This document shows, in pieces, positions 1,562 to 17,467 of a stretch of DNA of 64,000 bases (within the stretch, counting starts at the first letter, position 1; each line of letters opens with the position of its first letter). Below the pieces are notes generated by a model, which searched no databases, was not told the origin of the DNA, and saw only the letters and a program-made list of their open reading frames with translations. Origin of the DNA: Sphaerodactylus townsendi. Its lineage: Eukaryota. Location of the stretch: contig NC_059429.1 of assembly GCF_021028975.2 (NCBI RefSeq), forward strand, positions 25,234,001-25,298,000. Direction: 5' to 3'. The translations under genes and the position numbers were made by a program.

Positions 1562-1819
1562 NNNNNNNNNNNNNNNNNNNNNNNNNNNNNNNNNNNNNNN
1601 NNNNNNNNNNNNNNNNNNNNNNNNNNNNNNNNNNNNNNNNNNNNNNNNNNNNNNNNNNNNNNNNNNNNNNNNNNNNNNNNNNNNNNNNNNNNNNNNNNNN
1701 NNNNNNNNNNNNNNNNNNNNNNNNNNNNNNNNNNNNNNNNNNNNNNNNNNNNNNNNNNNNNNNNNNNNNNNNNNNNNNNNNNNNNNNNNNNNNNNNNNNN
1801 NNNNNNNNNNNNNNNNNNN
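1562..1819. other. Assembly gap (N run)
   Basis: N bases. Confidence 1.
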
Positions 1820-1983
1820 AATGACATCATAGAAGATTTCTTACACGTATCTGAAGCTCTTTTGTGACATACCAGAATCCTCCTTCAGGCAGTGGGCTGC
1901 AATCGGGTCTCCCCAGCACTCATGCTAGGAGCCTGAACATAATGGAACAACACATGTGACTAGAATACCTTCTTGCCGAAATA

Positions 1984-2289
1984 ATGTTTCTGCAAAGGCC
2001 TTTGCAAATTCTTCTCTTTTGGACTGTCATCTTGTTCCTAGATTTTGTTGATACATGTGAACGGCCGGCTTGGGCGGCAGTTGTTTCGGATATGAAAGAT
2101 TCCATGCCATTATCTGCAAAACAATCTTACAGGATATACAGCTCATTGTGTGAGATCTGGCGTAGGTTACCAAGCCTATTCGAAGGGTGCCTACATGTTT
2201 TAGATGCCCGCTGTAAAGTGGTACTCTGCATATCTGTGATTTTATTTCTTCTCTACCTTTTACCCAAACTGGAAACGATAAGGAGAAAG
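1984..2289 (+). CDS. TEX50: TEX50-like copy A, coding exon 1
   Basis: ATG at 1984, donor GT at 2290. Confidence 0.75.
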
Positions 2290-4264
2290 GTAAGATGTGT
2301 AGCAGTTGTGTGATAAAGAAAACATTGCATAGCACTTAACATTCGCTGAAGACAATAACATTTATTTTAAAACTGACTCTGCCTTGACTGGAGGGAGATG
2401 GGAAACACCTTCAAAATAATAATATTAACTTGAGACAGGGACTTGGGAAACCAGAATGTCAGCTAGAGCAGTTTCACCATAAAGAATAAACCCTAACATA
2501 TAATAGCTAAGACAGAGAGTGCACAGCTACACTAAAAACATACATTTTCAGAATCAGAAACCTTTATTAGGCATCAGGTTAAAAGAAGGTCCAGAGAGAA
2601 AGAACAGTGCAGCACCACAAATACAAAACAATAATGAACGAAAAAAATTAAAAAGGAAACTGAGGTCTCCAAAACTTTCATCAAGTACTTGGTCACATCT
2701 CTGTTATCATGCTATCCTCATTATTTAGGAGAAAACAAATCCAGATTTAAACAGAACAGTCCCTCACAGAGGTGGGCATGAGGCAGCAAAACTCTGGTCT
2801 AAAGCTAGCATACTTAGGGCACATGAACAAAATGTTTCCACAACAGTGGTACAGTATGAACAGACCCATTCCTGGTTAACTGTTCCTGGTTAACAATATT
2901 CTGGAATCACCCTGAAAGCAGGGCAGAAGGAAATGTGTTACTTCTAGCCCCTGTAAGAGTCCATCTTTGTTTTGGTGTAAATATTGTATTTAAATAACTT
3001 GCAGTTTGGGCTTTCTAAGGGACAATGCCAAAATATAAGGGAGAACATGAGTTTCCAGCCCTGCTAGTTAGGTACTGATATTCTTGATCAAGTAGGCGAT
3101 CCCTGATTGTACAAAACAATTCATTGGGTGCTAGCATGTGGAGAAAATCCCAGGAAAGCCTCAGAGAAGCCAGCTTTTTGTCAATGAGTGCCCACCAATG
3201 AGAGGCACAAAGGTGTGATAAAGCAAAGTAGGTAAAGCTATTCGCATTGACAGAAAAACAGAGTTAGAGGCAGAATTTAAGAGCGAGTAACCAGGCTCCA
3301 GTACTCAAAAGATGCTGACTTCCAAACATAGGGCTGCATAGGTAATGCAGTGAGGGACCCCAAACAGTTTGTACATAAAACTAGATTTGTTGTAAGGATG
3401 GGTTCCAGGCACAGATCCGTAGGGGAACTCCATATTAAAGCAATTGGATTACCTTTTAATTAAATATCTTTAGGGCCACAGATATGTACTGATCTCCTTT
3501 GGAGTAAATATTTTTTTACTACAGCAGCCGAGGTGGATTTGGGAATAGGAACAACAATTTTTGCTAATTCCACCCTCTTGCTGTAGATGCCTTCTTTTCC
3601 TCCCAGGCTGTCTAGAAAGGTCCCATTTCCCTCAAGAACTGCATTTTGGGAAGGGACTTGATATGCTGTGGTGGAGGCGGGGGCGGGGGAGGAATGTACT
3701 GTTTTATCAGTGGAGCTTTATTAACAGTGCTTTGGATCCAAACCAAAGAATAAAGTAGTGAAATACTATTTTTTTATCAGTGTGCCCGAACAATGCTTCA
3801 TTGAATTAATTACCACTCATCAAGCAACTGTAAAAAAAAAAACTAGTACAAAAAAGGAATCCTGCTTAATCTCTGCCAAATGTTGTTATTATTGGTGGAA
3901 AGAATTAACTCGTTTTGTCTTTTTTCTTAAAATTCCATCTGATCAGAGAGTGATCCAAGCACCAGCGGTTTCAGAGCGTGATCCAAGCACCAGTGGTTTC
4001 AAAATGACTACTGAACAGCCTCCCGACACAGAAAAGATGCTCTTCAGATTGGTGGCTAACACCTCCAAGATGATGAAGTACACGGGACACATTGCCCATC
4101 ATTACAAGAAAGAAGCTAGATACCATAAATTAAGAAAAAAGAAAACAGACGAGGACATTGATGACAACCAGTATTTCCCTATTCGTTCCCATTATTACAG
4201 CTCCAGTGGGGACACAAGCTACGCATGGAATCCAAACAGCAACAAGATAAAAGACTCAAATTGA
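1984..4264 (+). CDS. TEX50: TEX50-like single-pass membrane protein, copy A; join(1984..2289,3947..4264), 207 aa
   Basis: Signal-peptide-like N-terminus, CERPAW motif, TM segment VVLCISVILFLLYLL, basic stop-transfer; AAG|GTAAGA donor and CAG acceptor, both phase 0; exon 2 DTEKMLFRLVANTS...HKLRKKK resembles recalled human TEX50; same nested antisense position in ANKRD45 as in human. Confidence 0.75.
3947..4264 (+). CDS. TEX50: TEX50-like copy A, coding exon 2
   Basis: Pyrimidine tract and CAG at 3944-3946, TGA at 4262-4264. Confidence 0.72.
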   Translation, partial: RVIQAPAVSERDPSTSGFKMTTEQPPDTEKMLFRLVANTSKMMKYTGHIAHHYKKEARYHKLRKKKTDEDIDDNQYFPIRSHYYSSSGDTSYAWNPNSNKIKDSN

Positions 4265-4961
4265 ATCAATGTATTAATTGCAGTCATGGGCCAGACCAAA
4301 TACAATAAATAAATATGCTATATCATAACACACCAAACACCTCTACAAAACCTTAACATGCCTCTGCAAAATATCAAAATGCTACTACGAACCATTAAAA
4401 TATTAAAATATGGTAAGGAGTACCACAACAGGTAGGAGAGATCTAGCTTTAGTCAGTGATTCTTTTATCAGGGTATCAGGCAACTGTTTCTAATCCTAAT
4501 TGCTAGCCAAGTGTACTTGGCAAGATTATTAATGAACTCCTGGTTCGTATCTGATAGTAATGTTTTCAGTCTCTGTTTCCTCTGATTGACAGGGAAGTCA
4601 ATGAGAATTGGCAACAGTGGGCCTTTCTGTACATGATTATAAATCTTGCTCACAAAGAGAACATGTTCTGCTGTTTCTATGCTCCCATCTTGGCAGATAC
4701 AGATCTGATCTTCGATCAGGGACCAGGTGTATTTCCCTTCAATAAATGCAGAGGGGCGAGCATTATAGTGTAGAAGAGTAAAAGCTCTTATATACTCAGA
4801 ATTTGTGGTTAGAAACATAGGGCACCAGAGTAAGCTTATTAAGCAAGGATTTATCAAAGCTAGGATTCATTATCCTGTTATAAGAGGCTGCTCTTCGACC
4901 TTAATTTGACGTTTCTCTTGGTCCGGTAAAACATAATCCCTAACATAGTCCATAACCCGTG

Positions 4962-5069
4962 CACAGGTGTCAAACTCATGGCCCTCCAGATGTTATGGAT
5001 TACAGTTCCCATCATCCCCTGCTAACTGTAGTCCATAACATCTGGAGGGCCACGAGTTTGACACCTATG
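4962..5069. mobile_element. Palindromic hAT-type MITE
   Basis: Arms caggtgtcaaactc...gagtttgacacct; same family as 52409-52532. Confidence 0.8.
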
Positions 5070-5512
5070 GATGAGAGAGACGATAACTGCTGTGTTAGTG
5101 CTTTTTGCCAAGGCGCAACTAACATATCCAAAACAATTAAACAGGCCCTTCTGGCAAAAAAGCAATTTTACCCCGACATTAAAGTAACAATCCATAGTTT
5201 TGACTGGACTGTCACCACTCCTCTCTCTGTCTGGACTGGTGCATTTGAGATATTATTTGGTAGCTGGAAAATTGTTTTCAGGAATTTAGATTGTATTAGC
5301 TCCAGACTATGGGGGTTACCAGTGATGCTTATGGGGACACTGTATAGCAGCCAGGCAAGAGGCTTGGCTTTAAATAACGTACCGTAACAGCAGCTGGAAC
5401 ACAACATGCACCTCTGTACCAGAATTTCTGTATAGCGCCTATGCTTTTCTGCACATTGAGATATATTTCATATGGGAATTCCTAGAATGTGAGGCTTGCA
5501 AGACAACACCAG

Positions 5513-5630
5513 GGATCATTCCGCATGGGCCAAAAACAGCAGTGTGAAAACGGTGTAAAAGGGTTTAAAGCGGTGTAAAAGGGTTTATACCGTTTTCACA
5601 CCACTGTTTTTGGCCCATGCGGAATCAGCC
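5513..5630. mobile_element. Palindromic PIF/Harbinger-like MITE
   Basis: Arms attccgcatgggccaaaaacag / ctgtttttggcccatgcggaat; same family as 49960-50099. Confidence 0.7.
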
Positions 5631-6154
5631 CAAGATAATCATAGAACTAGATCTGTTCTAGGGAAATCCTATTTAAACTTCATGAATGTATTCTAGGCTT
5701 ACTGAGATAAATCAATTGGTCTTCTTATGATTGACTTCTACCTGGTTCAGTTGGCAATAATTGGCCAGTACACTTAATGTCCTCCAGAGGCTGATAGGGG
5801 TCCTCGAAAAAGAAATAAGCCATTTAAATAAAGGAGCAGAGAAATATGTTTTCCAGCAGTTTTGGACGGACGATAATGTATGTTCTTGAGGTGGGAAACC
5901 ATGTCATTGATATGCAAAAGTGGAGCTATGATGCAGCCTTGCTTCACCCCTTTTCTTGATCTTATTAAATTAGCAAAATGACTTTGTAGGCTGCATTTAA
6001 CACTAATAGCTGTATTTTCCTGCAGAACCTTTATCAGAAAAAGGAGCAGTCCATCAGTGGGGGTGTTACTCAATGTATCCCACAAGGTATCTCCAGAGAT
6101 GGAGTCAAATGCCACTTGAAAGTTAATAAAAGCAACATAAAGAGATATTGTGGC

Positions 6155-6333
6155 TGGTTGTTGTGGGTTTTCTGGGCTGTGTGGCCGTGGTCTGGTAGAT
6201 CTTGTTCCGAACGTTTCGCCTGTATCTGTGGCTGGCATCTTCAGAGGTGTATCACAGAGGGCTGTGTCCTGTATACACACAGCCCAGAAAACCCACAACA
6301 ACCAGTTGAATCCGGCCGTGAAAGCCTTCGACA
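6155..6333. mobile_element. PLE-derived insertion with inverted termini; hammerhead motif at 6207-6247 (-)
   Basis: 12-bp direct repeat agatattgtggc at 6143-6154 and 6334-6345; inverted end sequences. Confidence 0.8.
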
Positions 6334-7344
6334 AGATATTGTGGCATTTGAAGAATATTTTGCCAATAAATGTCCTAGAACCATACAATGATATAAAGTA
6401 GAATGCCCCTTTCAGAATCTTCCCTGTTCTTCAGCTAGGGAGGATTCAAGCCAAACCCTTATTCAAGCCAATCCCTGAGCTTCCCAGTACAAGCGCGTAG
6501 CATAAAATGTACTTATTGTGCTAAGCAAACGTATTGATTTGTAATTGGCTGGGTCATTCTTATTTCCCTTCTTATAGATTCCCTTCTTATAGATTGCCAC
6601 TTCCCACACTTTTGGGAGTCTCCCTATTCTGTTTATTAGTGTAAACAGGTACCTACCTATCCATGTTTGTTTGTTTTTATTTGGGTCAAGTGGTACTAAG
6701 TCAAAGCCTGGAGCTTTCCCAGATCCAAGAGTTTCAATCAATTTCCTTCAGATGTTTCAACTTTTGGCCACCAGGGTAATTTATTAATAAATTCAGGACC
6801 CATTGTTTGAGGCAAATTCAATTCTAATGAGGAGCATAGCACTTTAAAGTGGGTTTCCCAGATTTTAAGGAGAATTGTTGCATATGAAGAAGACTTTTTG
6901 GGCAGACTGAGACAAGACTCCAAAATTGGGAAGAGTTTTTTTGAATTCCACAGCTCGTCTGAGTTGTTCCCACGCTTTCATTGTGGCCAATTTCTTTTTG
7001 GATTGTATAGTTATTTTGTATTTATTTTTAGGATCCTTGATTTCCTTCATGAGGCTATCTGATAGATTACATCTATAGCAGGAAAGAAACAAGAGAAAAG
7101 ACTCTTGCTTCTTTGTCTCATCTTTTAAAATGCTGCCCTTCAGCTAATCAACTGGAAGGTAAATAACAAAAGCCAGAATGTGCTCAGCATGGTCCAAAAT
7201 GTTTTCTGCGAAGGGGCTTGAAAGAAGAGCTACTCCTTTTTTCTTAAAATTTTCTTAAAATGCAAAGAAATTTGCATTTAAAATATCAGTAATTATAAGA
7301 TTATATTTGATGGACAACATGACTAAAATATGGCACTGCCTATG

Positions 7345-8060
7345 TGTTTATAAAATGCCGTCAAGTTGCTTCTGACCTATGCTGTAGGAATTAATGACTT
7401 CCAAAATGTCCAATCATTAACAGTCTTGCTCAGGTGTTGCAAACTGAGGGCTGGGGCTTCCTTGATTAAATCAATCCATCTCATGTGGTCTCTTCCTCTT
7501 TTCCTGATGTCTTCTACTTTTCCTAAAATTATAGTCTTTTCCAGTTATTCTTACCTTCTTATAATATAACCAGTATTCCCTGGAAGCCACACAGGTGTGC
7601 GGCCAGTAAATATTGGTGACTCAGATCCGTGCAGCGCTTGGTTAGAGAGACTGTTGAATGTAATCAAAGTACAATTGCCTCTGTTTAGTCATTTTAACTT
7701 TCAGGGAGAGTTCAGGTTTCATTTGATTTGGAACCGACTTATTTATCTTTTTGGTGGTCCGCAGCATCCAAATAGCAGCAATACCACATTTCAGATTACT
7801 CAACTTTCTTCCTGTCAGCTTTCTTCATTGTCCACTTTTCACATGCATACATAGTAATGGGGATGTATCTTGATCTTGGTTGCCTGTGACACATTGTTAC
7901 ACGTATGGATCTTAAGTGCCCCTCCCAGTCTCAGTCTTCATATTTCTTGGTTGAAGTCTCCCTTTTGGTTGATGATGGAGCTCAGGAATAGAAAATCAAC
8001 AACAATTTTAATTTCTCCGAAGTCAACCTTCAAATTGTGTAATTCCTTTCGTCTTCTTGA
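7345..8060 (-). mobile_element. RTE-clade LINE 3' fragments
   Basis: caatccatctc...cttcctcttttcctg...gtcttttccag and ttcttcattgtcca...catgcatacat resemble the RTE/BovB 3' region in reverse. Confidence 0.6.
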
Positions 8061-8308
8061 TATTTAGTTGCAAACACACTTTGGCACTTTGGCTTTAACT
8101 TTTGTCACACACTTGGCTTGTCGAGAAACGCCTTGGAGTCCTTGACGACATCATAGCAAATTTCTTACAAGTATCTGGAGCTCCTTTATGACATACCAGA
8201 ATCCTCCTTCAGGCAGTGGGGCTGCAATCGGGTCTCCCCAGCACTCATGCTGGGAGCCTGAACATAATGGAACAACACATGTGACTGGAATATCTTCTTG
8301 CCGAAATA

Positions 8309-8626
8309 ATGTTTCCGCAATGGCCTTTGCAAATTTTTCTCTTTTGGACTATCTTCTTGTTCTTAGATGTTGTTGATACTTTTGAAAAGCCGGCTTGGGC
8401 GACAGTTGGCTGGGATATGCCTCCGCAAGATTCCACACCACTGTCTGTAGAACAACCCAGCGGCATATACAACTCATTGTGTGAGATCTGGCGCCGGTTT
8501 CCTGGCCTGGGGCTATCCAAAAGGTGTCTACGTGTTTTAGATGCCAGTTGTAAAGTGGCACTCTGCATATCTGTGATTTTATTTCTTCTCTACCTTTTAC
8601 CCAGACTGAAAACGATAAGGAAAAAG
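8309..8626 (+). CDS. TEX50: TEX50-like copy B, coding exon 1
   Basis: ATG at 8309, AAG|GTAAGA donor at 8627. Confidence 0.78.
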
Positions 8627-10052
8627 GTAAGATGTGTAGCAGTTGTGTGATAAGGAAAACATTCCACTCTTAACTAACTGGTTACGCAGCACCTGTTTCA
8701 CTGCAAAGAACATAATTTACTTTTAAACTCACTGGGCTGTCCCACAGGAGGCAGTCAGACTGGGAGGGTGAGGGAGCGGCAGGGTGGGAAACTCCTTCAA
8801 AATAATAATATTAATTTGAGACAGGGGGTTGGGATTAGGAATAAGATATTTATGTGTCTCAGGGAATGCACTGCTTGTTGTGTAGGAAGTAAGAATAGGC
8901 CAAGAACATCTGAAGGGTCTGACGAGATCTCCCCTCCAACTGGGCAATCTAGCAGTGCAATCCCATGGAGAGTTATTCCAATGCAAAAGATTCCCCTCTC
9001 CTCCATATGAAGCCTGCTGGGTGACCTTGGGCCAATTACGGTTCTTTTAAAACTCTTTCAGTTCATGCAGAAGCAGCCAGCGGCAAACCACCTCTCTCAT
9101 TCTCTCATAGCCTTGAAAAGCCCATGGGGTCACCGCAAGTCAGCTGCATCTTGATGGCACTTTACACAGACACAAGCCCACTGAAATCAGTATGTGCACA
9201 CTAGACTAACTCTGCATAGAACTGCACGATAGGACACCACTGAGGGTCCCACCATTAAGAACTCAACCCTTTGACTGTTTTAGTTGCTGATCCCCTTTGC
9301 CTTTAACAGAAGCTTGAGGAAAAAAAGGTTGTATTCAGATGTCCTTTCTGCAGATAGACAGAAAACCCTTTGGTCTAAAGAATGGGGACAGCAGTTTTTG
9401 CTGATTTCACCCTCTTGCTGTAGATGCCTTCTTTTCCTTCCAGGCTGTCTGGGAAGGTCCCATTTCCTTCAAGAGCTGCATTTGGGGAAGAGGCTTGATA
9501 TGCTGCAGTGAAAGCGGGGGCGGGGGGGGGGGTTTGGAATGTTGGAACCCTATTGAGAGTACTTTGGATCCAATCCAAAGACTAAAGTAGTGAAAGCCTA
9601 CTCTTTATCTGTGTGCCAGAAAAGTGCTTCACTGAATTAATTACCCCCCACCCCCATCAAGCAAACATTAAAAAATTAGTACAAAAAAAGGAACCCTGCT
9701 TAATCTCTGTCAAATGTTGATATTCTTGGAGGAAAGAATTAACTCATTTTGTCTTTTTTTCCCTAAAATTCCACCTGGGCAGAGAATGATCCAGGCACCA
9801 GTTTCTTCACCCGCTGTCAACATGACTACTGAATGGCCCCCAGACACAGAAGAGATGCTCTTCATATTGGTGGCTAACACCTCCAAGATGATGAAGTACA
9901 TGAGACTAGTTGCCCGTCATTACAGGAAAGAAACTAGACACCATAAACTAAGAAAAACGGAAAAAGCTGAAGACACTGACGACAAACAGTATTTCGCTAT
10001 TGGTTCCCACCATCACAGCTCCAGCGGGGACACAACCATGTATGGCATCTAA
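8309..10052 (+). CDS. TEX50: TEX50-like single-pass membrane protein, copy B; join(8309..8626,9783..10052), 195 aa
   Basis: Paralog of copy A; AWATVGWD matches recalled human VWTKVGWE; TM VALCISVILFLLYLL; phase-0 GT-AG intron; AATAAA at 10411-10416. Confidence 0.78.
9005..9168 (+). mobile_element. SINE 3' fragment in the copy B intron
   Basis: gcctgctgggtgaccttgggc core followed by a ggcaaaccacctct...cttgatggcac tail. Confidence 0.6.
9783..10052 (+). CDS. TEX50: TEX50-like copy B, coding exon 2
   Basis: CAG at 9780-9782, TAA at 10050-10052. Confidence 0.75.
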   Translation, partial: RMIQAPVSSPAVNMTTEWPPDTEEMLFILVANTSKMMKYMRLVARHYRKETRHHKLRKTEKAEDTDDKQYFAIGSHHHSSSGDTTMYGI

Positions 10053-10434
10053 ACAGCAACCAGAGAAAAGACTCATGGTTCTTTGTATGATTGCAATGCT
10101 GCCCTTAAGCTAACCAACAGGAAGCTTGGTCCCCACTCTCAAGAACTGACTAATTAAGAGTCAATTTAGGAATGAGTTATATGCATTAAACAGTCTTCTG
10201 CCTGGTGGGAAATGACATTTCCATCAAGTCTTGTTAAGGACATCATAACAGCAAATGCTTCTCCCATTAATGCTGATGCCTTCCCCATAAAACGAAAGGG
10301 TGGGCAGCCAGTTAAGAGCTGCAAAAGCGTGTATTGCCAAGAAGGGTTCACTGTGTGCTGCCCCGAACCAAAGACACACACATGACCAGCTCTGCTTGGA
10401 AGGCCATAACAATAAATTCTGAACATCAACCAGT

Positions 10435-12774
10435 CAGGGGCGGATTTAGATGAAGAGAGGTCCTAGGCTGATCTACTTGTTAGGCCACTCTCCCCACCCT
10501 CACAACCATAGGAAGATGGAAGACTATTTTAAAACTGAGTGAAGCCAAGGATGATGATGGGTGTTTAAAATCCTGCAATTCACAATTGCTCCTCTAAAGG
10601 ACAGGCATAAGATGTTATTGTGAAATACCGTAGTCATTGAAAAAAGTGCATAAATGTTAAAATTAACAGTGTGAAAAACTTTTGCCATAACCATACATTG
10701 TAAACATTTGTGAAATAAGCAAGAATTTTGAGGAAAATGAAATTGTAAGTTTACTGTTATAGCCTTTAAAAAATGTTGACCTTACACATTTTATTGCCTG
10801 GTAATAATTAATAAGATGATCATGACTACCTGACAATGATAGCGTGACATTTTTAGATCCTACTTTATGTTGTGATTAAAGTCAGTTTTGAAATACATAT
10901 TAAGAAATAAACTACAATCATCAAATACACTAAGACTAAAAAAAATTTTCTAGCCTGCCTTCTGGCAAAATCAGTCAAAAGTTCATCAAAAATTTGTTTG
11001 TCACTTTCAATGCACAAAATACTCAGTGCAGGCGACCTATCTTGAGACATTGTGGCCCTTAATTCATTTTTAATTCTTTTGAGTTCTGAAAAAGATCTCT
11101 CCTACAAGAAGTTAGTGACCATTAAATTAAGAAACAGCCACAAGATTGCTTCCATATTATGGAAGGCCATCTGAATTTTTTCCTTGTATGTAATTTGACA
11201 AAGGCAGAGGTGTATCGGAGGGGGGTGGTGGCGCCCAGAGACATCCCTTTCTCTGGGCGCCCACACACACACCCTGCACTCAGGGGCGTGGCTTGGGGAG
11301 GCCAAAAGCCATCCTGCACAGAGGGCGGCAGCGGGCGGCCCTGGTGGGCGCTACAGCCCCCCACCGCTGAGCCCTGCCCCCCACCTCCCTGCAGGCCAGT
11401 TCCTGAGCCGGCCTGCAGGGAGGCGGGGGGCAGGGCTTGGTAGTATGTGACTGGGGCACACACACACCTTTTGGTCATGTGGGGGGGGGACCCCATGTCC
11501 CTATGGGCCATATGCCTCTGGATAAAGGTCTGTATGGCTTTGTCAAGTGAAAGTGCAAAAGTTAATCAGTAAGTTTCACGTCAACATCTTCTGGGTTTGC
11601 TTTCATCAACAGTTCAACACCTTGCTGAATTTCCTGTTTAGATGCTGTCAGATTAGCAAGAAAGGAAAACATTTGTGCAATATCACAGTACACAGTAGCT
11701 CTTCTCAAACTGGCTTCAAGTGCATCTAGTTTAGGAATAAAGGATTTAATCCTAAACTTATCTCTTGAAGAAAGTTCATCTAAGTATCAGGACCAGGGGC
11801 ACTTCCATCATTCCCCTGTCATTTCCTTGTCACCTTGTGACAGTTCAATAGTTAACATTTGGCGAAGCTTATCAAAATTTTCTCTAAATTTGTTTTAAAA
11901 ATCCTGAAGTGAACTGTACAAACTAGTACAAGTACTCCTTCACAGTTCTGATTTCTGAATGGCTTTGCTGACCCCGTGAAAATGGCCTGGCACACGGGTC
12001 CAAAAATGCAGCATTAACACAAATTCCAGTTCTTTCATTCACTGCAGAAGATGGTTAGCTTGAAGCCTGGTACCACCCTTCCCATTAACATCGGAGCAGA
12101 AATGACCGAGGCCATCAGCGATAGCACTGTAACTTTCTAAAACAGCTTCCGCAATTTTTGCATGTGCCTCCCACCCAGTGTCTGACAAATATTTAGGCAC
12201 TTTTGACTGAGGCTGTAAAAATGATTTTAGGACTGCCCATCTCTTCGAGGAGGATGAAAAGAAGGTATCATTTCATTGATAATGCCAAAACAGTTCCCTG
12301 TGTCAAGGCAGCAGTCAACGGCCAAACAGCGCACCAAATTTCAAGCATGCCCAGCGCATGGAGTAAAGCATGGAATAAATGGAATGAAAAATACAGGCCA
12401 ATAGCTACTTAATATAAACACCACTCCCTTCCAGCAATCATTATAAGAAATCCTCATACCCAGAATATTAATATGGAGTTTGTAACAAGGCTGGAGTCCT
12501 TTTAAAGGAACTTCCTACAGTTTCAGGCCCTTCGGTCAATCTGGGAAGATTGTGCCTTTTCTTCCTTATGTGGAATATTTTAATTATCTAGTGGACTCAG
12601 TATTACACAAGGAAAATTACTGAAGAGTTTTTTAACAACTACAGCGTGTTTTGGCAGCAGGTGTAAGAAAGGCCTATGACAGTGTCAAAAATATCATACA
12701 CCTGGGCCAGAGGCCCGCTAGATTTTGAGGCCCTAGGCATCAGCCTGGCAAGTCTATAGATAAGTCCGGTCCTG
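10435..12774 (-). mobile_element. hAT DNA transposon with decayed transposase
   Basis: 8-bp TSD caaccagt at 10427-10434 and 12775-12782; TIRs caggggcggattta / taagtccggtcctg; minus-strand remnant ERSFS...IKNELRATMSQDR (hAT dimerisation domain). Confidence 0.88.
11205..11520. mobile_element. Non-autonomous hAT element nested in the larger hAT
   Basis: TIRs cagaggtgta / tatgcctctg; TSD gacaaagg / gataaagg. Confidence 0.8.
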
Positions 12775-13506: not shown

Positions 13507-13779
13507 GCCTCAGAGACTAGACATGAAATAATGGATTCAAGGTGCAGGAAAAGAGATTCCACTGAAACATTAGGAAGAACCTTCTGACTGTCAGGGCTGT
13601 TTGACAGTGGAATTCACTGGACACAGTATATAACAGACTTCCCGCTGTGATACACCTCTGAAGATGCCAGCCACAGATGCAGGCGAAACGTTAGGAACAA
13701 GTTCCACCAGACCACGGCCACACAGCCCAGAAAACCCACCACCACCTGTAGAATCCAGCCGTGGAAGCCTTTGACAATA
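13507..13779 (+). mobile_element. CR1-PLE chimeric insertion (CR1 13507-13620, PLE end 13621-13779)
   Basis: About 94% identical to the reverse complement of 359-577, with the same junction. Confidence 0.8.
13655..13695 (+). ncRNA. Minimal type I hammerhead ribozyme motif (PLE-type), intact core
   Basis: cct CTGAAGA t gcc-agccacagatgca-ggc GAAA cgtt agg. Confidence 0.68.
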
Positions 13780-13943: not shown

Positions 13944-14420
13944 CAGTGGTGGCGAACCTATGGCACGGGTGCCAGAGGTGGCACTCGAAGCCCTCTCTGT
14001 GGGCACGCACAAACAAGAGTGCCTGGGCTGCTGGGCTCGATTATTAGCATTAAACTGAAGACCCAGTTTTGGGGAAGCAGTGTAGGTAACCCTGTTAAGT
14101 GCTGTTAAACTCCACTGATTTTCATGTGAAGAACTAAAGCATGATCCTTTACCTGAGCAAGCTCTGCAATGGGGCCGCTTCTGAGAAAACCCCTCCTAGG
14201 GATCAAGGATTCACCCATTGGAAGAGTTGCACAGCTGTCAAGCAGCCACCGACTACCACCAAGCCTACTCCTGAGTAACGCATGCCTCGGAGCCCCACCG
14301 TTTTTTCTAAACTAAAACCTCACTATTCAGGTTAAATTGCCGTGTTGGCACTTTGCGATAAACAAGTGGGTTTTGGGTTGCAATTTGGGCACTCGGTCTC
14401 AAAAAGGTTCGCCATCACTG
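13944..14420. mobile_element. Non-autonomous hAT element
   Basis: TIRs cagtggtggcgaacct / aggttcgccatcactg; TSD ccctagat; related copy at 48855-49257. Confidence 0.9.
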
Positions 14421-14902
14421 CCCTAGATCCTATAGAATGGAATCTTTGAACTAGCAACGACGCACAGAGACATGCATTACGCCATTTTGTGAACAGGGCT
14501 CTCCCAGCGGCAGTGCCTGCCAGAGGCTAAGACCTTGTTAGTGTTTTTTTGGAGGACTAGTTGAATGCAAAGGCTGGTAATTTTGCCCTGATGGATTACA
14601 GAGAAGAATTCCAATAGTGGAGAATCTACAAGAGAGTTTTCATTAAGAGTTATCCATTGGTATGACAGAACAAGCCTTTCAGCCTGCAGCCTAAAAGTGC
14701 TTAAAAACAGATATAAGTGCTTCACAATTTCCATTATATGCAGCCTTTATACAGGTTAATATGCTGGTGTAATATAGTGCTTGTGCAATAAAGTGCTTGC
14801 GTAATATAAAAAAAATTGCATTGTGCATGTGGACGTATGTTCTGGCTTATTATGTTAGATTAGACAGATACTTCAAACAAACTCAGAAGTTACAGATTTT
14901 AC

Positions 14903-15070
14903 CTGCCCAGTCCAAGAATTCTACACACTCCGTCTGCTCATAGCGGTTGGCAATATCTCTAGCCTTTTCACCCTGAAAGGTTGTTGCATATATGTCAGCT
15001 TCCAGTTCTATGAGAGTTTTCAGAGTTTCCAGTTGCCCCCAGGCAGCAGCACAGTGCAGGAGTGTATAAC
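14903..15070 (-). CDS. ANKRD45: ANKRD45 second coding exon (168 nt)
   Basis: cag|GT TAT ACA... TGG GCA G|gtaaaa, phase 1/1. Confidence 0.92.
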
Positions 15071-17196
15071 CTGTGGGAGTGAACCAAATCAACTATATAA
15101 GATTTCAGAATCTGGAAAAAATACAAAATAAAACTTTATTCATATCTACCAGTGTGGGGCTCTCCTCATGAGGCACTGTTGGGAAGATGTGATGGAGTTG
15201 GGAAATGGAGTACAGAGATATCTAGTTAAACACTAATGATAGAGGTCAAATAATATATGAAATGAAATCTTTTCAAAAGTTGAATACAGAGGGCTTGAAA
15301 ATAGATTGGTGGTTTTACTCTCAACCGAGGAACTGCTTTTTAAAGAATAGAGTAAATTTCAGGAAGATAGATGAACTAGATAGACTTGAAAAAGTTCTCT
15401 TAACATCAGATAAATCTCTAATTGGGGATATGTACAAATTATGTAGGGATTTAGACCAAGAAAAGGACTGCATTAAAGACTACATGATAAAATGGGCTAG
15501 AGATCTAGGCTATAAAATTATGTTAGACTCATGGGAACATCTTTGGACAAATACTCTTCGCTTTGCTACAAATAATTTCCGGTATATAAGGCAGACTTTT
15601 TAATAAAATATGGCTAAGATGGTATATTACACCTGATAAACTGGCCAAGATTTACCAGTGTTCTGACAGATGTTGGAAGTGCGATAAAGAACCTGGCTCC
15701 TTTTATCACAAATGGTGGCTATGTGAAAAAGCACAAACCATTTGGAATAGTATGATAAAGAAATTATGAAGATCCTAGGAATCAAAATTATCTGTAAACC
15801 AGACCGTTATTTATCAGGGATGGTCAACAAAAGACTGGAGGAGAATCAAAGTAAACTATTCCAATATCTTGCTGCTGCAGCCAGCTAAGAATTGGAAACT
15901 TTATAAATGCTCAACTCAATCAGAGGCTCATTCCGCACATGCAGAATAATGCACTTTCAAACTGCTTTCAGTGCTCTTTGAAGCTGTGCGGAATAGCAAA
16001 ATCCACTTGCAAAAATCCACTTGTGAAAGTGGTTTGAAAATGCATTATTTTGTGTGTGCGGAAGGGGCCAGAATGGCAAATAAAAGTTATGGAAATAGTA
16101 CATGTGGTGAAAATATGTGATATGACAGAACTTGAAGGGACCATGGAATTTTAAAAGGAATGGCAAACTTGGTTTAATTATGTATAGACTGTATTGATAT
16201 AGACTTCTTGATTTTCTCATTATATTAATTTTTAAAAATCTATATATAGTAGTAGTGACAAATTGGAAGTAACCTGGCCTGAAGTATTATATTGGAACTT
16301 TGAGTATTGATATTTCTGGGTCTCCTTATCTAATTTTTCTTCTTTTTATAAATTATCAAGATGTTATAACTTTATGTTTTCCTATAAATATATTCTTCTT
16401 ATATTTCATTATTTTCTCAATAAAAGAATTTTTAAAAAAGTCACCACAAATTACAGTGGAAAGAAACATAACAGCAGTATTCAAAAAACACTGAAGTGTT
16501 CCAGACTGACAAAAACATCTAGATTCTGTGTAAAATGGAGAAGATGCATGTCGTGAGGAAGGATTACAATCAGACGAAACTTTAAAAGTTATCCTCTCCC
16601 CAACACTAAGGGGAAAAAAATAGGAAGCAGGGTAGTAAAAAATATTGTTGACATTTTTGCAAATGTGGGGAAAAATCCTAAACACAAACTCAAAACGGAG
16701 ATTAAATGTAACAGGGAGGTGGCTAAAAAGTCACCTGAGGACCTGAGAAGCAGTACAGTAGAGCTGAAATATCTAGTGCATTTGGATGGGAAAGATTAAG
16801 ATGGCGACATGCTTCACAATATCTTCAGAAGAACCAACAGAAGACCTGTGGCCAAGAACCAGGCTCCAAAAATGCTGTCATTTATGTACCTCTGGCTGTC
16901 TTATCCTTCAAATCCACTCCATATTTTGCCAGTGTTCGAATAACATCACTCTGGCCAGCCATGCAAGTCGCATACAACAGATCCCTCCCTACAATGTCCT
17001 TTTCCATCAGTAGCTCAGTGGCCTTTTCACGATCAGGATCCTCTGGGTCATCAAAAATCTGTTGCACCCCTTCTGTGTCTCCAGTCAGAGCGGCCCTCAG
17101 GAGAGGGTTGAAAGTTACTGGTTCCTCTTGAGGCTCCAAATCCTCTAGTGTGCTTGCTTCCACTGAACCCGCAGACTCCTCTTCTACCACTTCCAT
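14903..17196 (-). CDS. ANKRD45: Ankyrin repeat domain 45, 5' coding part; join(17196..16890,15070..14903), continuing beyond the window start
   Basis: Ankyrin repeats NPLLRAALTGD, GRDLLYATCMAG and GYTLLHCAAAWGQLETLK; synteny with KLHL20. Confidence 0.92.
15180..16439 (+). mobile_element. L1-clade LINE 3' fragment
   Basis: KWARDLG...W, RWYITPDKLAKI...CWKC...YHKWWLC (L1 ORF2 C-terminal zinc-binding region); ends with AATAAA and an A-rich tail. Confidence 0.85.
15925..16069. mobile_element. Harbinger-like MITE inserted in the L1
   Basis: TIRs ggctcattccgcac / gtgcggaaggggcc; 3-bp TSD aga; relatives at 50814-50956 and ~60570-60712. Confidence 0.7.
16890..17196 (-). CDS. ANKRD45: ANKRD45 first coding exon (acceptor at 17211, ATG at 17196)
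   Basis: MEVVEEESAG...KDKTAR G|gtacat. Confidence 0.9.
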
Positions 17197-17318: not shown

Positions 17319-17467
17319 NNNNNNNNNNNNNNNNNNNNNNNNNNNNNNNNNNNNNNNNNNNNNNNNNNNNNNNNNNNNNNNNNNNNNNNNNNNNNNNNNN
17401 NNNNNNNNNNNNNNNNNNNNNNNNNNNNNNNNNNNNNNNNNNNNNNNNNNNNNNNNNNNNNNNNNNN
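17319..17467. other. Assembly gap (N run)
   Basis: N bases. Confidence 1.

Follow-up and report, generated by a model that had tools for sequence, protein, structure and literature searches.

We analyzed 64,000 nucleotides (nt) of the genome of Sphaerodactylus townsendi (assembly GCF_021028975.2, contig NC_059429.1, positions 25,234,001 to 25,298,000 of the forward strand), referred to below as the window, in which two neighbouring candidate genes of the TEX50 (testis-expressed protein 50) family were found. The window, vertebrate DNA with a G+C content of about 40-44%, carries on its plus strand two paralogous two-exon units, here called A and B, in tandem head-to-tail orientation (Table 1). 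The coding blocks add up to 102 + 105 = 207 codons in gene A and to 106 + 89 = 195 codons in gene B. Comparison of the two units by blastn yielded a 5′ block (1823-2329 with 8147-8666, 86.7% identity over 520 positions), a short block at the start of the intron (2399-2448 with 8785-8834, 92%) and a 3′ block (3543-4258 with 9380-10075, 79.9% over 728), while the middles of the introns and the 4-kb spacer gave no alignment between A and B. The encoded proteins agree at 68% of residues in exon 1 and at 62% in exon 2. Here and throughout, searches, alignments, trees and counts of the ratio of non-synonymous to synonymous substitutions (dN/dS) were made exon by exon.

Exon 1 of gene A would encode a signal-like segment, a Cys-containing ectodomain, a transmembrane segment and a basic stop-transfer sequence. 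Exon 2 would contribute a cytoplasmic tail that includes the conserved MLFRLVANTSKMMKY block and a stretch that is first basic, then acidic; its C-terminal end is displaced in frame by an indel of 1 nt. The hydropathy profiles of both copies consist of an N-terminal hydrophobic segment, a single 19-residue segment (residues 75-93 in A and 79-97 in B; mean Kyte-Doolittle score 2.3), predicted to be transmembrane, and a charged tail. This agrees with the signal peptide, single transmembrane helix and charged tail proposed in a preliminary description of the same DNA. Exon arithmetic on the sequence likewise reproduces the units of that description, with their coordinates and junctions, the lengths of 207 and 195 residues and splicing in phase 0, and its further observations, that the intron middles cannot be aligned and that exon 1 indels between the copies come in multiples of 3, correspond to the blastn alignment of intron ends only and to two 6-nt events, respectively. 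Its start at 1820, on the other hand, merely marks the edge of a run of N, and it was silent on the duplicated splice acceptors of copy A and on the 1-nt indel that shifts the last 15 or so codons of this copy.

Table 1. Positions of the TEX50 units, of the adjoining ANKRD45-type exons and of associated features in the window
Feature	Position	Strand	Remarks
N run	1562..1819	.	abuts copy A upstream; conceals the distal promoter, perhaps also an ANKRD45 exon
Gene A 5′ flank (proximal promoter / 5′ untranslated region block)	1823..1983	+	94% identical to the B flank; conserved in four other squamates
Gene A exon 1, coding	1984..2289	+	102 codons; ATG at 1984; donor AAG/GTAAGA after 2289
Gene A intron	2290..3946	+	phase 0; acceptor CAG 3944-3946; aligns with the B intron at its two ends only
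28-nt tandem duplication in gene A	3944..3999	+	units 3944-3971 and 3972-3999, 26/28 identical; a CAG acceptor in each
Gene A exon 2, coding	3947..4264	+	105 codons plus stop (4262-4264)
Gene A polyadenylation signals	4304..4313	+	two overlapping AATAAA (4304/4308), about 40 nt 3′ of the stop
Gene B 5′ flank, conserved block as in A	8147..8308	+	94% identical to the A flank
Gene B exon 1, coding	8309..8626	+	106 codons; ATG at 8309; donor AAG/GTAAGA
Gene B intron	8627..9782	+	phase 0; acceptor CAG 9780-9782; very high-copy repeat near 8930-9129
Gene B exon 2, coding	9783..10052	+	89 codons plus stop (10050-10052); C-terminus like Varanus and alligator
Gene B AATAAA	10411..10416	+	about 360 nt 3′ of the stop; ATTAAA also at 10185
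ANKRD45-type ankyrin exon with GYTLLH	14901..15092	-	Pfam Ank, E = 1.2e-7; 81-89% identical in five squamate loci
Next ANKRD45 exon upstream (in its own sense)	16885..17145	-	weak Ank_2 match; 71-87% identical in the same five loci

Comparison of the predicted exons with known proteins indicates that both units are members of the TEX50 family. When exon 2 of gene A was searched against 5.8 billion proteins, it matched a 200-residue Podarcis protein (E = 7e-17) whose cluster bears the RefSeq name "testis-expressed protein 50" (P. raffonei XP_053247201.1). A tblastn search with Podarcis TEX50 identified exactly two copies within the 64 kb, with all four exons colinear with the query (E = 2e-10 to 8e-23). 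The other squamate relatives matched were the TEX50 proteins of Liasis and Varanus and a Hemicordylus LOC protein; the RefSeq entries concerned, besides the Podarcis protein, are those of Liasis olivaceus (193 residues), Varanus komodoensis (198 residues) and Hemicordylus capensis (LOC128322547, 205 residues). The window copies fall in the same length class as these proteins and have the same two coding blocks and N-terminal start. They also have in common with them the C-E-R-P-A-W ectodomain motif, the position of the transmembrane segment, the M-L-x-R-L-V-A-N-T-S-K-M-M-K-Y tail block and the S-S-S-G-D-T end, at an identity of 36-60%.

The similarity extends beyond squamates. A profile built from the four squamate TEX50 proteins retrieved 29 proteins from 1.8 billion representatives, including those of turtle (2e-38), alligator (1e-36) and birds, and mammalian TEX50 from bat (9e-13), wallaby (9e-12), echidna/platypus (6e-7 for echidna) and baboon. 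Using hhalign, the exon 1 pair of the window was matched to an alignment of mammalian TEX50, for which non-human sequences were used, with a probability of 94.9% (E = 4.6e-8, columns 1-102 with 1-104), and the exon 2 pair with one of 90.3% (E = 1.5e-6, columns 10-91 with 110-192), the two matches being mutually colinear. The position of the intron, right behind the transmembrane and basic stop-transfer segment, is conserved as well: the window junctions lie at 2289/3947 and 8626/9783, a few codons earlier than in Podarcis TEX50, and the coding sequences of five other squamate loci are split at residues about 107-112. Membership of the TEX50 family, as put forward in the preliminary description, is supported. 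Searched exon by exon, the units gave significant matches to lizard, snake and monitor proteins named TEX50 in RefSeq, and they share with this family the profile link to mammals, the two-exon structure and an ANKRD45 neighbour.

In separate trees of exon 1 and exon 2, copies A and B were sisters, with 100/99 support in both trees, and lay inside the squamates. This sister relationship shows that the duplication is specific to the lineage, as the preliminary description had supposed, and each of five non-Anolis squamate loci has one TEX50 copy within +/-10 kb, in contrast to the two in the window. Unlike four other squamates (loci L001, L003, L004 and L005), A and B both lack some 85 nt just upstream of the ATG; the region of this deletion lies at 1940-1983 and 8265-8308 in the window and at about 9900-10000 in the other loci. 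Farther upstream of the ATG, the window copies and four other squamates have a conserved block of about 100 nt in common. A search for RNA runs covering the stretch returned none, and the runs used were all genomic. For the source species (two individuals) and for two related species, genomic contigs cover exon 2 of A and the exons of B. In sequencing run X1, the depth over exon 2 of A and the exons of B was 75 and 69, compared to 70-88 over single-copy flanks. Since contigs of the two related species contain the copies, the duplication predates the split of those species.

We estimate at roughly 70% the probability of the reading favoured here as a whole, in which two tandem TEX50 paralogues, produced by a lineage-specific duplication in a squamate genome, would encode membrane proteins of sperm like that of the mouse. 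One could imagine instead that the open reading frames are chance open frames or belong to an unrelated gene for a small membrane protein, in keeping with the lack of any relevant family in a Pfam scan of the four exon translations and with a word-index search with exon 1 of B, of limited sensitivity and length range, that returned no match. Pfam, however, holds no TEX50 model, and Podarcis and bat TEX50 likewise score nothing relevant; the empty word search reflects its limits of sensitivity and length, because tblastn and the profile show clear homology. With significant matches to named TEX50 proteins, colinear mammalian profiles and conservation of both intron position and synteny, we rejected chance frames as contradicted by the data and attach practically no weight to them. 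An equally far-fetched possibility is that there is only one TEX50 gene and that the assembly shows it twice, as separate haplotypes or through the collapse or expansion of a repeat. The N run that abuts copy A upstream and the 95% identity of parts of the copies would fit such an artefact, but the overall DNA identity is 80-87%, the intron middles are unalignable, 4 kb of unrelated spacer rich in long interspersed nuclear elements (LINEs) separate the copies, and contig depth (about 69-88 throughout in run X1) equals that of the single-copy flanks rather than half of it. A haplotype or mis-assembly reading was rejected on these grounds. The duplication is real, because the copies occur at the depth of single-copy flanks in independent genomic contigs; mis-assembled haplotypes, for which the preliminary description had looked to read depth, are at odds with the full single-copy depth found in two individuals and two related species.

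Whether both TEX50 copies work is a separate matter. Their frames have stayed open against neutral expectation, but under weak constraint. When either copy was evolved neutrally in simulations at 0.10-0.145 substitutions per site, only 3-11% of trials remained free of stop codons. Between the exons of A and B there are two indels of 6 nt, a 28/10-nt pair whose members compensate each other and a single 1-nt indel at the end, whereas the five indels in the alignable part of the intron (2, 1, 2, 5 and 1 nt) include no multiple of 3. Identity between the copies is 94% in the 5′ flank vs. 83% in the 3′ part of the intron (p = 1.4e-4). Residues conserved in the outgroups have been lost symmetrically, 12 in A and 15 in B. 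Divergence between the copies is centred on the ectodomain (proportions of synonymous and non-synonymous differences pS 0.30 and pN 0.19), and the flank, the signal, the transmembrane part and the start of the intron are about 95% identical; these blocks could reflect either constraint or patchy gene conversion.

A number of observations weigh against two maintained genes. The dN/dS ratio between A and B is 0.64 (0.70 in exon 1 and 0.57 in exon 2; p = 0.06 against 1). Copy B has no Cys at the conserved position ahead of the E-[RK]-P-A-W motif, copy A is missing the conserved Trp of the ectodomain V-x-W motif, and neither has the conserved cytoplasmic Cys near the C-terminus that is present in other squamate TEX50 proteins. 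The N run hides the region upstream of A. A 1-nt indel after SSSGDT rewrites the last 15 or so codons of A, where the end of B is like that of Varanus and alligator, and the exon 1 branch is about 6-fold longer for A than for B (0.33 vs. 0.056). Copy A also lacks 10 nt that are present in B between the Q-A-P and M-T-T-E codons, a deficit offset by the 28-nt duplication, and only the upstream of its two acceptors (exon start at 3947) keeps A in frame; a start at 3975 leads to a TGA after 10 codons. Copy A presumably uses the upstream acceptor, where the ancestral polypyrimidine context is retained.

The dependence of the frame of A on the choice of acceptor, its rewritten C-terminus, its long exon 1 branch and its missing Trp, along with a pairwise dN/dS that would suit one constrained and one neutral copy, are all compatible with a single working copy, most likely B, next to a young, silent or decaying one, most likely A, whose frame is open partly by luck. 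We think this unlikely, though it deserves to be taken seriously. A neutral copy would rarely have remained stop-free in the simulations, and several frameshifts would be expected in it. The tail block of A is identical to that of B save for one residue, its promoter block is 94% identical, its splice and poly(A) signals are canonical, its losses at conserved sites are no higher than those of B, and its exon 2 is closer to Podarcis (54%) than is that of B (49%). The earlier suggestion that both genes are maintained is likely to hold, though it is weakened by the dN/dS value and by the compensated frameshift and altered tail of A. Judged from these sequence features, it is probable that both copies are expressed and functional, and very likely that at least one of them is.

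Some variation was seen within and between species. Among the differences listed for related species and individuals, those in coding sequence were at 4222 (synonymous), 4248 (non-synonymous), 4258 (synonymous) and 9789 (non-synonymous). The last is an A>C polymorphism of the source species, seen in its second individual, by which codon 3 of B exon 2 encodes Leu instead of Ile. At three positions near the end of B exon 1 (8604, 8609 and 8622), in a region where the copies are about 95% identical, the contig of the second individual (run X3) has exactly the letters of copy A, that of run X5 has them in part and that of run X1 has none. This pattern is explained either by the cross-placement of a short copy A contig or by a polymorphic gene conversion tract from A to B.

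The mouse member of the family is a protein of 189 residues with a signal peptide of 23 residues and a transmembrane segment at 78-100 (PMC12435281). Mouse TEX50 is a testis-specific, single-pass membrane protein of late spermatids that forms a ring around the margin of the acrosome, later relocates to the posterior ring in the sperm head, and binds SPEM3; its loss results in head-tail defects, immotility and male sterility (PMC12435281, PMC13711846). TEX50 is described as conserved from reptiles to mammals and treated as one gene (PMC12435281, PMC13711846), whereas SPEM3 is described as conserved among mammals only (PMC13711846). Although only about 20% identical to mammalian TEX50, the window copies are colinear with it over both exons and share with it a predicted signal peptide, a short ectodomain, a single transmembrane helix around residue 80 and a charged tail. 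In the model we favour, exon 1 of each gene would encode the signal peptide, the short Cys-containing ectodomain and the single transmembrane helix, and exon 2, joined after the phase-0 intron, a charged cytoplasmic tail with the conserved helix-like block of the family. By homology with mouse TEX50, the products would most likely be type I membrane proteins of late spermatids. Because they keep this topology and the conserved tail block, a role in the sperm head like that of the mouse protein, with a posterior ring, SPEM3 and male fertility, is our best guess.

Multiple copies of TEX50-like genes also exist in Anolis carolinensis (LOC107982358, LOC134295872, LOC134296777 and neighbours), where, as in the window, they have two exons, encode about 190 residues and are partly in tandem. 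They are 31-40% identical to the window copies. In contrast to the window pair, the Anolis copies form a clade of their own with 100/99 support (two in the tree, P0013 from locus L006 and P0017 from L007), number at least five, of which three lie in tandem inside a complexin-type (Synaphin) gene, and have no ANKRD45 exon within 10 kb. The expansion in Anolis is independent of the duplication in the window. On Anolis chromosome CM069368.1, three complete tandem copies plus fragments lie at about 306.06 Mb (L007:3256-4357, 10001-11379 and 14406-15477), and another copy plus an exon 1 fragment at about 300.3 Mb (L006:10001-11076). A further Anolis LOC (P0033) is on the same chromosome, and all Anolis copies are annotated as 'uncharacterized'.

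Downstream of the TEX50 pair, and antisense to it, lie two exons of an ankyrin-repeat gene homologous, by Pfam match and 71-89% identity, to the host of TEX50 in other squamates. At five comparison loci (L001-L005, from two Podarcis species, Liasis, Varanus and Hemicordylus), TEX50 is antisense inside an ankyrin-repeat gene of 261-286 residues that adjoins PRDX6, and the same two ANKRD45 exons are downstream of TEX50 in all five, as in the window, with the GYTLLH exon adjoining. The ANKRD45 exon sited 1.1-3 kb upstream of TEX50 in other squamates was not found anywhere in the window, and nor was PRDX6; both may be concealed by the N run or be situated beyond the left edge of the window. The nesting of the TEX50 pair in ANKRD45 is therefore visible on one side only and is otherwise inferred from synteny. 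Of the antisense nesting inside ANKRD45 claimed in the preliminary description, the GYTLLH exon downstream is thus in place and the exon on the other side is absent from the window. An apparent match to Podarcis at 530-868 on the minus strand was rejected as an ANKRD45 exon; it is the ORF2 tail of a CR1-type LINE, with an internal stop, present in several copies.

Several repeats lie around these genes. The Podarcis locus contains two copies of the CR1-type element of the 530-868 region. Within its first 14 kb, the window has three copies of a repeat of about 220 nt, at 360-577 and, inverted and 94% identical to it, at 13507-13726, and again at 6176-6259. The spacer between A and B consists of degenerate LINE reverse-transcriptase fragments at 4468-7100 on the minus strand (weak RVT_1 matches). 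Very high-copy 200-nt bins were found in the spacer (4930-5129, 5530-5729 and 6130-6329) and in the intron of gene B (8930-9129); in each of the four genomic runs, their summed word depth reached millions. Another N run (149 bases, 17319-17467) lies just upstream, in the sense of the gene, of the ANKRD45 exon at 16885-17145.

Within the same interval, protein identity to other squamates is 71-89% for the ANKRD45 exons vs. 36-60% for the TEX50 exons, suggesting that TEX50 and the overlapping ANKRD45 evolve at very different rates. Since TEX50 of reptiles has already been published, is named in RefSeq and is multi-copy in Anolis, what is new here is only the tandem pair of this lineage and its details. 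The preliminary description overstated the case in saying that automated annotation could easily miss such genes: in RefSeq, the name TEX50 is already in use for Podarcis raffonei, Liasis and Varanus, and there are models for several of the Anolis copies. The exon coordinates given here do provide a ready gene model for annotating the Sphaerodactylus townsendi genome.

Recent work in mice has demonstrated that sperm head integrity and male fertility depend on TEX50, and the window pair adds a small data point to this picture. We tentatively raise the possibility that TEX50, a single gene in studies of mouse and human and single-copy in four non-Anolis squamates, was amplified independently at least twice in squamates, to two copies here and at least five in Anolis, and that both copies in the window were kept through a divided or changed ancestral role, each having lost a different conserved ectodomain residue, the Cys in B and the Trp in A. 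If so, the concentration of divergence in the ectodomain would be in line with sperm competition or sexual selection on a membrane protein of the sperm head, and the two products might work as a pair. Together, the tandem pair, the expansion in Anolis and the contrast in rate between TEX50 and ANKRD45 suggest fast evolution and repeated duplication of this gene in squamates.

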